Below, one piece after another: positions 4,795 through 62,475 of a stretch of DNA of 64,000 bases. The stretch spans positions 74,053,779 through 74,117,778 of the forward strand of contig NC_068991.1 of assembly GCF_001194135.2 (NCBI RefSeq), written 5' to 3'. Each line of letters starts with the position of its first letter. The stretch's first letter is position 1. Source of the stretch: Octopus bimaculoides. Its lineage: Eukaryota. A model generated the notes under the pieces. The model had not been told where the DNA came from. It searched no databases and worked only from the letters and a program-made list of their open reading frames with translations. Position numbers and translations under genes: made by a program.

Positions 4795-4890
4795 ATGTGC
4801 TGTTGCCTACCCCTCAATTTACCATGTGCGAATAGGGAAAATACTCACATGACAAAAAATACCCATGCAGCCAGAAAGTTTCAGAAACAG
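4795..4890 (+). CDS. Candidate SRPK first-exon 3' end: phase-2 start MQPESFRN-R (ATG 4865), overlapped by a phase-0 ORF MCCCLPLNLPCANRENTHMTKNTHAARKFQKQ (ATG 4795)
   Basis: Strong donor CAG|gtatgc at 4891 after a CT-rich and GCT-rich leader (~4400-4790). Only the ATG at 4865 is in phase with the SRPK exons. Confidence 0.35.
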
Positions 4891-7794
4891 GTATGCACCC
4901 CCCACCTTACCTTCATTTCATATCCCTCACTCTCTCTCTCTTTCTCTCTCTCTCTTTCTCTCTCTCTCTCTCTCTCTCTCTCCTTCTTTCTCTGTCTCGC
5001 ACCCCCCTTGATGTGTGCCTTCCTGTATGTGTTGTATATTTTGTTTCATTATCAAGGTCCAGCTGAATATCCTTTGATGTTGGAATATTTCTCTTTTTTT
5101 TTTAATTCTTCTTTTTCCCCCTTCATCACTTTAATGAAAATACTTCCAAATTTTGCAAAAAGTTTGTGGTATTCTTTTATTCTTTCAATTTTGGAGAGAT
5201 TTAATTTCGTTTTCTGTGTTTTCTCATAAATTACTTTGGTTCATTCAAATTTAACCAATTTACAAATCTTTCTGTAAATTCTTTACAGTTTTCTTTCAAG
5301 TATTTAAAAAAAAAAATCAAGATTCACAGAATTTTATCTGAACTTTTTATTTTTTTTTATTTCAATATTTGTCGTTGCAAAGAAATTGTAAAGTTGGTAC
5401 ACACACACACACACAGACAAAACGAGTCTAGGATGTATATACAGTAGCTTGTTTGGTACCTTCTTAGTTCCTGACTTGAAATTCCACGGAGGATGACTTT
5501 ACTGTTCATCCCCAGAGACTGATAAAACAAGAACTAATAATACTGGAGCCAAGTCGAAAGAATATACACCTTTCACAAGAAAACTGCTTTGTGCCTACGA
5601 AAGGAATCACTTGTCATGGTAAATTTCCTTGTGGAAACGTTTTAGACTTGGCCTTGCAAACATTCTTCATTTCTAAGAGTCAGCCGCCCATCCGTCCAAG
5701 AAATGTATGTGTTTCTTAGTATTGATTTTAATTATGTGAAGCTTTGCTCTGTATGTATATGTTATTTGCATCCTTTCTTGTCAGCATTTCTTGTATTTTC
5801 AAACATATCTTTTGGGTTAAAATAATAATAATAATAATAATAATAATCTCTTTGTTTCACATAAACTCTCTTATATGTAAATACACATGTGCACACATAC
5901 ATTTCCATGTTTATATATACAATTGTTTGTGTCTGTGTGTATACATATATATATATATATATATATATATATATATATATACACACACACATATACACGT
6001 GTGTATATACATGCATACATATATGTATATACATATAAACATTTATATACATGTGTATATATAAACGCACGCACACACACACACACACACATGTATGCAG
6101 AAAGAATTCTTGTACACTTATTGAAACAGCTTAATTCTAGTTTTATCTTTCAAGATTTTTATTTATTCATTTAATTTGTATTTCCATGAGTTCCTTGCAG
6201 TTTGTTTGGAACTGTAAAAATTCCTAAATCCATCGTTATTTCTAGTTCTTCATAACCTCGTCTTTACTTTACACACATGCATATTATACATAGATATAAG
6301 CACATACACACTCTCTCTCTCTTTCTCTCTCCAAACTCAATGCAAGAACAATCTATCTTCTCATTAAAAGGCGGGCAAGATTGATTGGAACTCTTGTTCG
6401 TTGTTTTCCATGGAAGTTATTTTTAAAAGGAATGACGATGAGCCAAACTGGATTGGTATCTATTTTTGCTTCCGTTTTCCTCTCCCACATCTACAGACAA
6501 ACACTAACACTGCCACATTGAATTGGAGTTAATTTGGAGGCGGTGTGGTGTATGTGTGAGAGGACAAGCGTTGTTCTGAGTTTCCAAAGATTGATTTACT
6601 AAAAATATAGGCTACAAATTGTTACTTAGATTAATTTGCAGGAATTTGTTTTCTTTTTCCCCTCTCTCTCTCTCTCCTTAATTTTCACAGCAGAATTTTA
6701 AAATTTTTGTCAGTTTTTTTGAAATGATGAATATATTCTTGATATTTTTACTGTTTGCTTGCCATTCTTGATTTAGATGGGGAGGTAGAATTTATAGCTG
6801 TGTGTGTATAATCGTTGTGAATCGTCTGTTAAGATAAGTTGGTAAAACATTTCTTCAGCCCAGGTCTGCTTCCTTGTTAGTTACTGGTTCCACTGCATGC
6901 ACTGTTGGTTTTAGAAATTCTATGAATGTTGCAGGTTGACATTTCTTATCTGAATGTATCTGTACAGAAAGTCTGTATAGATTTCTTTTGGCCCGTGAAC
7001 AGCAAAGTGTAGGCCCTTTCTCCTATCTGAGTTACCTATGGGCATTCTGGCACTTGAACCTTGTAGTGGAAGGTCTTCAGGGTCTTGATTGCCCTGATCA
7101 AAACTTAAATTGCTGCTTCTCTCGTGATATGTGCGTGTGTAGGGGGGGGGGGGGTCACACTTATTTTTTGTTTTTTATTTATATATTTATATATGTCTTT
7201 GTGTAATTTATGTTGATTTACCAATTCTTTAATGACTGGATATATATTTGTATATCCCACCCTTCAGTTTTATATAAACCCTGTCTGTACATCCCCTTAT
7301 ATGCCTGCCATTCCACTTTAATAATTGTATTTATAAATGGGCCCATGTTACAAATTATAGAATTAAATTAGTAGGTTCTTCTCACCCCTGTGCCATCCCA
7401 CCGCCACTTATGGCTTATGGTATTTAGTTATATCTTTTTATGATTGAAATCTGTTTTTCTGTTCCTCCCTCTAGTCAATTATTGAATTCAATAAAATCAA
7501 TTACTCCCCCCCCCCTTCCTTTCCAAACTTTATGAGCCCCGCATTATTTGTGGTTAATGTTAGCAAAAATAAGTGTTGATCTTTAAGTGCCTCATTTAGT
7601 TCCAGTTCTCCGCTATGCTCTTACAGTCAAACCAATGTCATTGTTTGACTTTGTCTTTCGTCCCTCTACGATCTGACGAATTGTACGCGGATTGATTCTC
7701 TGATCTACTGATAAATTAATTAACAATATTACAATTAAATAATATTAATATATTATTATTATTATAAGCTTCTTTCGTACTATGGAAGTGTTGT

Positions 7795-7916
7795 GTTCCT
7801 GAAAATTTTGGTGTCGCATTCTGTAATGCGAAACTTATTTTTCTCCCGTGTTACATAACATGAAAAATAGGTTTTGCATTACAGAATTCCACATAACGGT
7901 AGGATTTTCAGGAATG
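7795..7916. mobile_element. Palindromic MITE-like element
   Basis: Inner arms attctgtaatgcgaaacttatttttc (7818-7843) and gaaaaataggttttgcattacagaat (7862-7887); outer arms ttcctgaaaat and attttcaggaa. Confidence 0.5.
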
Positions 7917-8081
7917 CAATTTCTGTGTAATGTGGAGCATGTCTGTTTTATTAGGATATAACAAGTACCTGTGAGACACTGATGTCAATTCAACTGGCTT
8001 CATTCCATATTTATTGAATGAAGTAGGAAACAAACCATGTTACTTTCAAGATGTTAAAAGCCTAATTTAACTGTGAGACTA

Positions 8082-8267
8082 AGTGCAGGGATGGCCGTGT
8101 GGTTAAGTAGTTTGCTTAACAACCAAATGGCTTCGGGTTCAGCCCCACTGCTTTGGGGCAAGTGTCTTCTACTATTGCCCCAAGCTGACCACTGCTTTGT
8201 GAATATGATTGATGGAAACTGTATTAAGCCCATTACACATACACACACACACACACACACACACACA
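8082..8267 (+). mobile_element. SINE family A (5' half)
   Basis: gtgcagggatggccgtgtggttaagtagtttgc...ggttcagcccc...ggggcaagtgtcttc. Confidence 0.75.
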
Positions 8268-60424: not shown

Positions 60425-61440
60425 GTTTGCATTTGGTTGCATGGTTTAGAAACTCACTTTGTAACCATGTGGCCTAGGGTTCAATCCCATTGCATGGCAA
60501 TTTGGGTGAGTGTCTTTCTACTATAGCCTTGGTCTGACCAGTGCCTTGTGAGTGAGTTTGGTACGTGAAAACTGGAATCTTGGCCAACACACACACACAC
60601 ACACACACACACACACACACACACACACACACACACACACACTAAACAATATATTCTTTTCTAGTCTAGGCACAAGGCCCGAAGTTTTGGGGGAGGAGGC
60701 CAGTCGATTAGATCAACCCCAGTATGTAACTGGTACTTAATTTATCAGCCCTGAAAGGATGAAAGACAAAGTTGACTTTGGCGGAATTTGAACTCAGAAC
60801 GTAAAGACAGACGAAATACTGCTAAATGTTTTGCCTGGCATGCTAACAATTCTGCCAGCTCGCTGCCTTTCAAACAATATATTGTCTGACCCATATCAGT
60901 ATTGAATGTGGCTGTTAAATGATGATGATGATGTATCTTTATATCTGTGAGTGTTTGGGGAGGACGCTCCACTGCTTGGCAACCTGTGTTGGTTTGTTAT
61001 GTCCCTATAATTTAGCAGTTTAGTAAAAGAAACTGATAGAATAATTAGTTGACTTTGAAAATAAATACTGGGTGTGATCTGTTTGACCAAACCCTTCCAG
61101 GTAGTGCCCCAGCATGACCACAGTCCAATGACTAAAACTTGTAAAAAATGGTTGCTTGCTCTGCTGCGGCCATGTGATTCACCTCTATGACCCCATTGCT
61201 ATGGCCGTTCAGCAAGAATATTCTGCTCTGCTGTAGCCTTGAGTTGGTCAGTACCTTTTTGAGTGGAATTTAGCAGACAGATTGTATAGAAGCCTATCGT
61301 GTGTGTCGGAGAGTTCGACTTGGTCATTCAACTCATAAAAACTGGGGTGAGGGGAGGAAAGGGTCAATATGATTGACTAAAGCCCCTGAAAGCAGTACCT
61401 CAGTGTGGCCCCAGTCTAATGACTGGAACCAACCAAAGAA
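60425..61440. mobile_element. SINE cluster: A(+) 60425-60640, B-variant(-) 60655-60868, A tail(+) ~60900-61140, A(+) ~61240-61440
   Basis: Family motifs. Confidence 0.7.
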
Positions 61441-61696
61441 TATACAGATGTTCCAATTTGGGGCTTTGTGTTCTTCCTCAGTTTACATTAATCTCTGCAG
61501 GGGGTCAGTATTCTGTTTTTGATCCTTCAGGTGTGTATAATTAATGAATCCTTAGTGAATTCCTTGCTCTTTTCTATTAGGTTGATTAGTTCCAAGCCAT
61601 CCTTGATTGAACAGACCCCTAATCATTGTGACAACAAACCCGACATTGTATATTTAGCACTGCAATACCCAATATGCTCATCTTTTTCCCTTTTTT

Positions 61697-61797
61697 TTTT
61701 TAAATCCCTTTTCCTTTTTTTAAATCCCTTTTCCTTTTTTTAAATCCCTTTTCCTTTTTTATAAATCCCTTTTCCTTTTTTTTTAATCCCTTTTCCT
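61697..61797 (+). repeat. Pyrimidine-rich minisatellite, about 5 x 21-22 bp (ttttaaatcccttttccttt)
   Basis: Direct reading. Confidence 0.9.
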
Positions 61798-62371
61798 TTC
61801 CAGATGACAATGTGTTTCGAGGGAGATTTTCTTGTTAATTCTAGCAAAGAGGCTTTCGTTCTTTGATGTCTCTGATATTTTTCAATAGTAAAAATGTTGC
61901 AGGCTTTCAGTTAAAATGGCTGGGGTCATTATCCTTGAATTTTTAATTAGTAAGCTTAAGATTGCTTTTTAGTGCTTTATTGTGCTCTGAAGAATGGGAA
62001 GAAAATTTCCTGTCACTCACAATATTGCATTTGCTCATTTGCTTAATCATTCAATATTACCAGATTTTCAGTGAAAAGCTGCAGAAAATTTTTAATTGCT
62101 GATAATTTATTATTTTTTTCCCATTTTATTATTATTTTTATTGTTTTTCATTTGAGACTGGAACTTCTTAATGATTGTGTTAGAGATGATATTTTTATAT
62201 GTCTTGATATAACCTTCAAAGTGTTTGAGTTTTACTCCCCCCTAAAGCTTGTTACCGAGGATTAGTTAAGCCTGATCTAATAAAACCATTTCATTCTACG
62301 TATTTGCTTTGAATGTCCTCACTTCTTTATTAAATGCTACATTTTCCCCCGACTTCTTTTCTGTGTTAAAG

Positions 62372-62475
62372 GTCTGCTGATACACACAAGTCTTGTGACC
62401 CCGTGTATGAAGATGAAGAAGAAATCCTTGGGTCAGATGATGATGAACAAGAAGATCCTCGCGATTACGTAAAAG
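62372..62475 (+). CDS. SRPK: SRPK (SRSF protein kinase) common N-terminal exon, phase 2 to phase 1, immediately before the kinase domain
   Basis: Acceptor ttctgtgttaaag|G and donor AAAG|gtaaac. The 104 nt read (x)SADTHKSCDPVYEDEEEILGSDDDEQEDPRDYVK(G), matching the SRPK1/2 motif EEEILGSDD(D/E)EQEDPxDYCKGGYH. The next exon (GYHPVKIG...) was not found before 64000. Confidence 0.95.

Follow-up and report, generated by a model that had tools for sequence, protein, structure and literature searches.

Alternative first exons and a putative second N-terminus in the 5' region of an octopus SRPK gene

How many N-termini does a single splicing-kinase gene offer, and which of them matter to the protein? 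The question is raised by a ~64-kb stretch of the Octopus bimaculoides genome (64,000 nucleotides (nt) of contig NC_068991.1, here called the window), which makes up part of the 5' region of the RefSeq gene "SRSF protein kinase 2". SRPKs regulate how splicing factors are phosphorylated and, in flies, how the presynaptic active zone is assembled, and to our knowledge isoform-specific N-termini are among the few means by which such a kinase can be directed to different places in the cell. N-terminal variants are known for vertebrate SRPK1/SRPK1a and SRPK2. A sequence-only reading of the window had described an array of alternative first exons feeding one kinase exon, and had suggested that octopus may have expanded these into a promoter-choice system giving the kinase several targeting tags.

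Based on comparisons to public isoform models and to transcripts of other cephalopods, we propose that the locus is, very probably, a multi-promoter SRPK gene with phase-2 first exons that fall into two tiers, one old and constrained, the other young and incidental. Transcription would start at several places across the large 5' introns, each first exon supplying an ATG and ending after the second base of a codon, to be followed by an optional cassette or directly by the common exon, which in turn would lead on to kinase exons beyond the window. The old tier, consisting of the canonical start, the cassette and the exon at 27149-27252, would give rise to functional protein variants. The young, short or fast-changing tier (4865, 21197, 29115, 52196 and 54066) would instead represent promoter or 5'-leader variants, the extra residues of which are probably incidental. 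Each first exon presumably has its own promoter, and levels of usage as well as any targeting function of the peptides are likewise putative. So described, the locus is an ordinary multi-promoter gene with one modestly new aspect, a cephalopod-wide second SRPK N-terminus. The earlier interpretation is partly supported: it stands in its core, multiple phase-2 first exons on one SRPK gene, and is not supported for the supposed kinase exon, for the candidates at 58830 and 56632, for octopus-specific tags and for the array.

The shared acidic exon and the isoforms that use it

All first exons converge on the common exon 62372-62475 (Table 1), bordered by ...ttaaag on its 5' side and gtaaac on its 3' side. 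The translation of 62373-62474 carries EEEILGSDD(D/E)EQEDPxDY(C/V)KG, an acidic motif matched by SRPKs across animals, and the exon corresponds to the conserved acidic segment directly 5' of the kinase domain in this family; it is found in every cephalopod isoform retrieved. Annotated proteins with a 100%-identical copy of the exon show two Pkinase (PF00069) matches, with PF07714 listed between them, i.e. the bipartite kinase domain that marks SRPKs, located outside the window and including the C-lobe KIADLGNACW...DIQTRQYR. The locus is an SRPK gene, as had been recognized in the sequence-only reading. The exon itself had been taken for the kinase exon; it lies ahead of the kinase domain, and coding sequence for that domain (GYHPVKIGD...GWGHFSTVW, next in the protein) is absent from the whole window.

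The first base (g) of exon 62372 completes a split codon, and the upstream donor must therefore be in phase 2, in agreement with the sequence-only reading. The start of the exon is the same in open reading frames (ORFs) of many animals, including vertebrate-like ones, and a decapodiform genomic contig matches at 84% nt identity over 62370-62479 only, so that the exon limits as well as the need for a phase-2 donor are conserved. An ATG is lacking from both the cassette and the common exon, the first in-frame methionine beyond them being situated inside the kinase N-lobe. A complete kinase can consequently only be made from first exons that carry an ATG and end in phase 2. The uniform phase of the annotated first exons follows from this requirement, together with the preference of annotation for coding models.

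Short protein queries returned only ORF fragments over the acidic exon (a query of 110 amino acids (aa) gave matches of 61-193 aa), from which, along with a local phmmer control in which SRPK1 would score 113 bits, we infer that the search was limited to targets within ~1.8-fold of the query length. Once the query had been extended to 720 aa by random residues, full-length cephalopod SRPKs were obtained, with 279 proteins retrieved. For O. bimaculoides these comprise the current RefSeq isoforms X1-X12 (XP_052827896, XP_052827897, XP_052827899 and XP_052827900, the others being numbered XP_0147766xx), an earlier X1-X6 set (XP_014776637-42) and a 2015 UniProt model. The comparison set consists of O. 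sinensis 'SRSF protein kinase 3/2' (numbered to X21, with 15 isoforms listed), Argonauta X3, and proteins of cuttlefish and a second decapodiform derived from RNA sequencing (RNA-seq).

All O. bimaculoides N-termini that were tested and are encoded here match the window at 100% identity, and public models use the exons at 4865, 21197, 27149, 29115, 40206, 52196, 54066 and 62372 as their exact N-terminal segments. RefSeq models of two Octopus species contain six ATG-bearing first exons of the window and at least three others, presumably upstream, each with its own start codon and joined in frame to the common exons. Three different SRPK starts are also present in cuttlefish RNA-seq contigs. O. 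sinensis shares the canonical start, MAVFPLY..., MQPESFRNR and the cassette without any difference and has MPFPSSK and MLACK as extra starts, and in Argonauta the canonical start and the cassette are both identical to Octopus.

All seven stretches named by the sequence-only reading, five first exons and two phase 2-2 exons, are present where it placed them, with open frames and phase 2 on re-reading. Four of its first exons (4865, 27194, 52196 and 54066) match isoforms exactly and the fifth, 58830, occurs in none of those retrieved; similarly, 40206 is used by isoforms and 56632 is not. Its proposal that first exons feed 62372 directly or via 40206 is borne out by the models of both Octopus species and, for the chain 27149-40206-62372, by the cuttlefish contigs, and the annotated first exons at 21197-21258 and 29115-29221 had been overlooked. 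The alternative first exons are already in the public annotation, in automated models that carry no remarks on function or evolution; what is added here is the conservation relative to cuttlefish and the frame shift at 21197. The new points are modest: a cephalopod-wide MAVFPLYIHPLIDCK... start, a strongly conserved 63-nt cassette, and the lack of constraint on several tags.

Exon 27149-27252 and the 63-nt cassette

Judged by its sequence conservation, the exon at 27149-27252 appears to encode a genuine second, cephalopod-wide SRPK N-terminus, MAVFPLYIHPLIDCKMSEPS...SPEPE[I/L]SM. The exon is identical in O. bimaculoides X2 and in O. sinensis X2/X7. Cuttlefish contigs, whose encoded protein shares 97.9% identity with Acanthosepion pharaonis SRPK2, align to the window in three blocks (27149-27220/27236-27256, 40203-40270 and 62371-62464), which is the exon chain of X2. 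The similarity begins exactly at the ATG at 27149, the 5' untranslated region being unalignable. The exon had previously been read from 27194, which is its second in-frame ATG; the exon is real, and its frame begins at the upstream in-frame ATG. Among 29 aligned codons of octopus and cuttlefish, 20 are identical, seven differ synonymously and two nonsynonymously, a proportion comparable to that in the constitutive exon 62372, with 19 identical, 11 synonymous and four nonsynonymous codons. An 18-nt (six-codon) indel between the two lineages keeps the frame. Twelve contigs encode the cuttlefish protein that has this N-terminus, its start being called at the second in-frame ATG, and the five places listed belong to five different RNA-seq runs. 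Among the alternative N-termini, only this exon displays coding-level conservation outside Octopus, and the MAVFPLYIHPLIDCK... start is without counterpart among the retrieved non-cephalopod SRPKs.

More tentatively, one may picture the MAVFPLYIHPLIDCK-MSEPS...SPEPE[I/L]SM form as the product of an internal promoter ~35 kb upstream of the common exon, held by purifying selection since the octopus-cuttlefish split and conferring a distinct localization or distinct partners, for example in neurons in the manner of Srpk79D-PC of flies, with further promoters gained and lost in Octopus; we regard this fuller scenario as possible and somewhat doubtful.

The second constrained element is the cassette at 40206-40268, by a wide margin the best phase 2-2 exon of the window in the splice-site scan. 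It is included in O. bimaculoides X1, X2, X3, X8, X9 and X10 and skipped in X4-X7, X11 and X12, and both inclusion and skipping are seen in octopus isoforms and in decapodiform transcripts. Octopus and Argonauta share an identical cassette. Relative to cuttlefish the nt identity is 94%, with 18 of 21 codons identical, none synonymous and three nonsynonymous; the constitutive exon 62372-62475 is less conserved (84.5%). A length divisible by three, conservation across lineages and the occurrence of included and skipped forms together make a pattern typical of a regulated alternative exon, and the constraint at the nucleotide level suggests embedded splicing-regulatory sequence. The Ser-rich cassette was seen in cephalopod proteins, non-cephalopod SRPKs not having been screened for a counterpart.

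Table 1. Features of the window. A slash marks the splice border in donor sequences.
Feature	Position	Strand	Encoded sequence	Splice sites and other details
First exon, coding part	4865-4890	+	MQPESFRN(R)	donor cag/gtatgc at 4891, score 9.1
First exon	21197-21258	+	MFHMATLKSSWLLFINAISF(K)	donor caa/gtaagc; earlier X3/X4 (XP_014776639/40)
Alternative first coding exon	27149-27252	+	MAVFPLYIHPLIDCKMSEPSPSPEFSLSPEPEIS(M)	donor cat/gtaagt; RefSeq X2
First exon	29115-29221	+	MVFFLEAGFMITVCKRYGLCFILLVFTCKYHHLLN(R), i.e. MVFFLEAGF...HHLLN(R)	donor cag/gtttgg
Assembly gap	35006-35081	.		intronic; dispersed repeats resembling short interspersed nuclear elements (SINE-like) on both sides
Optional 63-nt cassette, phase 2-2	40206-40268	+	(x)RKQAKHHDSSSGTESSSGTD(W)	acceptor 9.7, donor 8.3
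First exon	52196-52296	+	MSMVHYGRVILLAKLRKLLQQKDKRSRSYNYKF(R), i.e. MSMVHYGRV...YNYKF(R)	donor cag/gtattc
First exon	54066-54109	+	MRKQCPRSFQAISD(Q)	donor cca/gtaaga; exact match RefSeq X4
Second phase 2-2 candidate of the sequence-only reading	56632-56703	+	open, 72 nt	donor ttg/gtaaca, score 2.6
Fifth first-exon candidate of the sequence-only reading	58830-58846	+	MRAPH(K)	donor score 4.0; in no retrieved isoform
Common exon	62372-62475	+	SADTHKSCDPVYEDEEEILGSDDDEQEDPRDYVK(G)	entered in phase 2

The less constrained first exons and the readings weighed

At 4865, the exon is spliced to the cassette in X8 or to the common exon in X11, and its peptide is an exact match in O. bimaculoides X8/X11 and O. 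sinensis X11/X16. No other non-repeat patch of the window is as rich in CpG as the one around this exon (94th percentile of CpG count). The 4-6 kb bin owes its strong negative GC and AT skew to a long (CT)n tract at 4925-4990, which starts ~35 nt 3' of the 4891 donor.

The exon at 21197 has a homologue in O. sinensis X1/X21, whose peptide MFHMATLRAVGFYLFIDAVSFNK contains LRAVGFYL. In O. bimaculoides, it is the +1 frame of the exon that encodes this segment, with ~7 codons shifted and with the ATG and the final phase kept. Two compensating indels have thus altered the frame between the congeners, and as the shift has been tolerated, the amino-acid sequence is not constrained. The hydrophobic peptide of 29115 is a 100% match to the earlier X1 (XP_014776637) and is absent from the current X1-X12, and no CpG is found around the exon.

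At 52196 the exon is spliced directly to the common exon, exactly as in RefSeq X6 (XP_014776642) and in the 2015 UniProt model. Relative to O. sinensis X8, two of its 34 residues differ, as against four of 540 elsewhere in the protein (Fisher p=0.044), i.e. a rate ~8-fold higher. The possibility that the exon is a diverged duplicate of the canonical one was rejected, as 25% of shuffled sequences align equally well. None of the 15 O. sinensis isoforms listed has the peptide of 54066. Donor scores at 52297 and 54110 are 4.2-5.6. The remaining tags, MDTG, M, MQPESFRNR and MRKQCPRSFQAISDQ, are 1-15 residues long.

Could such exons be told from chance by intrinsic signals? With a simple donor position weight matrix (PWM) and a score of at least 4, that of the weakest candidate put forward earlier, 140 stretches lead from an ATG to a phase-2 donor on the + strand and 109 on the - strand; with the threshold raised to 8, 14 and 18 remain, respectively. 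These counts agree with the caveat that weaker candidates could be chance phase-2 stretches. The PWM scan of both strands, the in-window repeat map and the ratio of observed to expected CpG do not separate real exons from chance, the sole exception being the cassette at 40206. In a self-comparison 25% of the window is repeated within itself; as three quarters are non-repeat, location in a non-repeat patch does not discriminate. The CpG observed/expected ratio is 0.35, without any CpG island, some enrichment being confined to the patches around 4865 and 52196. The CpG-retaining patches that had been noted thus show a modest retention of little diagnostic value. In addition, four unrelated contigs carrying the acidic exon contain no homologues of the candidate first exons.

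Alternative starts of an SRPK have a functional precedent in Drosophila. Srpk79D (isoforms PB/PE versus PC/PF) is transcribed from two promoters with separate start sites, and information in its N-terminal domain targets the kinase to active zones, deciding between active-zone and perikaryal localization (PMC2759580), a precedent that had been correctly quoted. However, the two starts of Srpk79D precede long, non-overlapping N-terminal domains, whereas octopus has ~10 starts, mostly of 1-36 residues. Moreover, the octopus protein has an SRPK1/2/3-type canonical N-terminus and is at most a putative orthologue of Srpk79D; the comparison made here is one of start-site layout. Vertebrate SRPKs are similar to octopus in that a first exon is followed by a phase-2 junction and then by the acidic EEEILGSDDxEQEDP exon, and in the shared canonical basic start KVLALQARKKR. 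They differ with respect to the MAVFPLYIHPLIDCK... start, which is cephalopod-specific among the retrieved proteins. In the bivalves Pinctada, Mizuhopecten and Crassostrea virginica, some models start with unrelated peptides just before the acidic motif; these species also show a canonical MSSKIPRKALA.QARKKR start, and their alternative peptides are unrelated to those of octopus. Alternative first exons at the acidic-motif junction may consequently be widespread in molluscs.

Against this background, the proposal that octopus expanded its SRPK first exons into a promoter choice, with most N-terminal peptides serving as distinct targeting tags, seems improbable to us. It is compatible with the number of first exons, at least six within the window plus at least three further upstream, with isoform numbers running to X21 in O. 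sinensis, with purifying selection on the 27149 N-terminus, and with the targeting information that an alternative N-terminus can carry in Srpk79D (PMC2759580). Yet of the alternative N-termini only that of 27149 shows coding-level conservation outside the genus, most of the tags are 1-15 residues long, the two congeners use different frames of the exon at 21197, the peptide of 52196 changes more quickly than the remainder of the protein, the hydrophobic peptides of 29115 and 21197 are confined to older models, and the alternative starts of bivalve models show that the arrangement is not octopus-specific. Less probable still is the opposite view, that the canonical start alone is meaningful and that the internal first exons, including 27149, represent transcriptional noise or annotation artefacts. 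Here, the predicted nature of the octopus models, the weak donors at 52297 and 54110, the lack of a CpG island and the more than 100 comparable ORF-plus-donor stretches arising by chance are set against the 27149-40206-62372 chain in cuttlefish contigs from several runs, with its synonymous excess and its similarity starting at the ATG, which already contradicts this view for the 27149 exon. The same first exons have, furthermore, been modelled independently in O. bimaculoides and O. sinensis, and 52196 was also picked by the separate 2015 annotation. A tandem array of paralogous first exons, in the manner of the clustered protocadherins or UGT1A, deserves almost no credence and is refuted by the lack of paralogy: many 5' exons over tens of kb with one shared downstream exon recall such a layout, but self-BLAST coverage is 0, no first exon having a second copy in the window, pairwise peptide scores among the first exons, as well as between them and the canonical exon, are those of shuffled sequences, and the exons encode a few residues rather than a domain. 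The term array, as used by the sequence-only reading, is therefore not appropriate in this sense.

The two-tier, multi-promoter interpretation that we favor has its own weak points. The octopus isoforms are automated RefSeq (Gnomon) and UniProt predictions, from which the real usage of each first exon is presumed, and since annotation reports coding models only, the uniform phase 2 is partly a selection effect. O. bimaculoides and O. sinensis are closely related, and the identity of MQPESFRNR and MDTG between them says little. The rate test at 52196 rests on two substitutions. The comparison of 4865, 52196 and 54066 covers Octopus only, and homologues may exist elsewhere. Finally, one of the two assembly gaps, and not the upstream region, might in principle hold the canonical exon.

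That most octopus tags are short, young and unconstrained calls for caution: a large number of RefSeq isoforms should not be mistaken for a cephalopod novelty. The start at 27149 and the 63-nt cassette, on the other hand, represent two concrete and cheap targets for the study of isoform-specific SRPK function in cephalopod nervous systems.

Starts outside the window, assembly gaps and neighboring features

The O. bimaculoides isoforms X1-X12 are all explained by starts other than 58830, and the peptides of 58830 and 56632 occur in none of the 279 retrieved proteins. Several of the starts in use fall outside the window. The canonical start, MSSKIPRKALALQARKKR... with the basic (K/R)(A/V)LA(L/I)QARKKR, is conserved across molluscs and is used as MSSKIPRKALALQARKKRTKAKARFKEEKKR(S) in X3 and X7, while MKPLVNIVYQTFS is found in X1 and X5 and MDTG in X9 and X12. 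In agreement with the sequence-only reading, the canonical KVLALQARKKR-type N-terminus is absent from all six frames of the window, motif and tblastn searches giving only poly-A translations. MDTG, MKPLVNIVYQTFS and the O. sinensis MPFPSSK and MLACK exons could not be placed in the window either; matches of MDTG at 24599 and 63482 were rejected, being without the required ...GG/GT ending or 3' of the common exon. The canonical, MKPLVNIVYQTFS and MDTG exons are presumably located upstream of the window. We note that O. sinensis X3 and X4, as well as X9 and X10, differ by one extra lysine at the end of the canonical exon (...KKRSK versus ...KKRS), which suggests a tandem alternative donor 3 nt apart.

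The exons nearest to the assembly gap at 35006-35081 are those ending at 29221 and beginning at 40206, none being within 5 kb. The gap is intronic, and frame continuity across it is hence irrelevant; RefSeq X2 and X8 as well as the separately assembled cuttlefish transcripts join exons across it in assembly order. A second gap of 21 N, at 3569-3589, lies within (TG/CA)n and (TA)n microsatellite sequence. The SINE-like family comprises at least 12 copies in both orientations (e.g. 33594-33826, 34750-34990, 48376-48615, 55371-55600 and 63022-63188), with 84-91% mutual identity and the highest CpG density in the window, and no tRNA-like head was detected in these repeats by ARAGORN or Rfam. No long ORF, transposable-element coding sequence, Rfam family or tRNA was found in the window.

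The 2015 UniProt model (710 aa), which has the 52196 start, contains an insert of ~136 residues (LQSDLAEFLQLDALPNANHSE...) in the kinase N-lobe that is missing from all RefSeq isoforms and is probably an intron or repeat mis-called as an exon. The coding range of the gene is 268 kb in O. bimaculoides, 139 kb in Argonauta and 108 kb in Acanthosepion. Its convergent downstream neighbor encodes a CH and EF-hand protein of 593 aa in O. bimaculoides and 632 aa in Argonauta, and the presence of this neighbor in both genera indicates conserved synteny.

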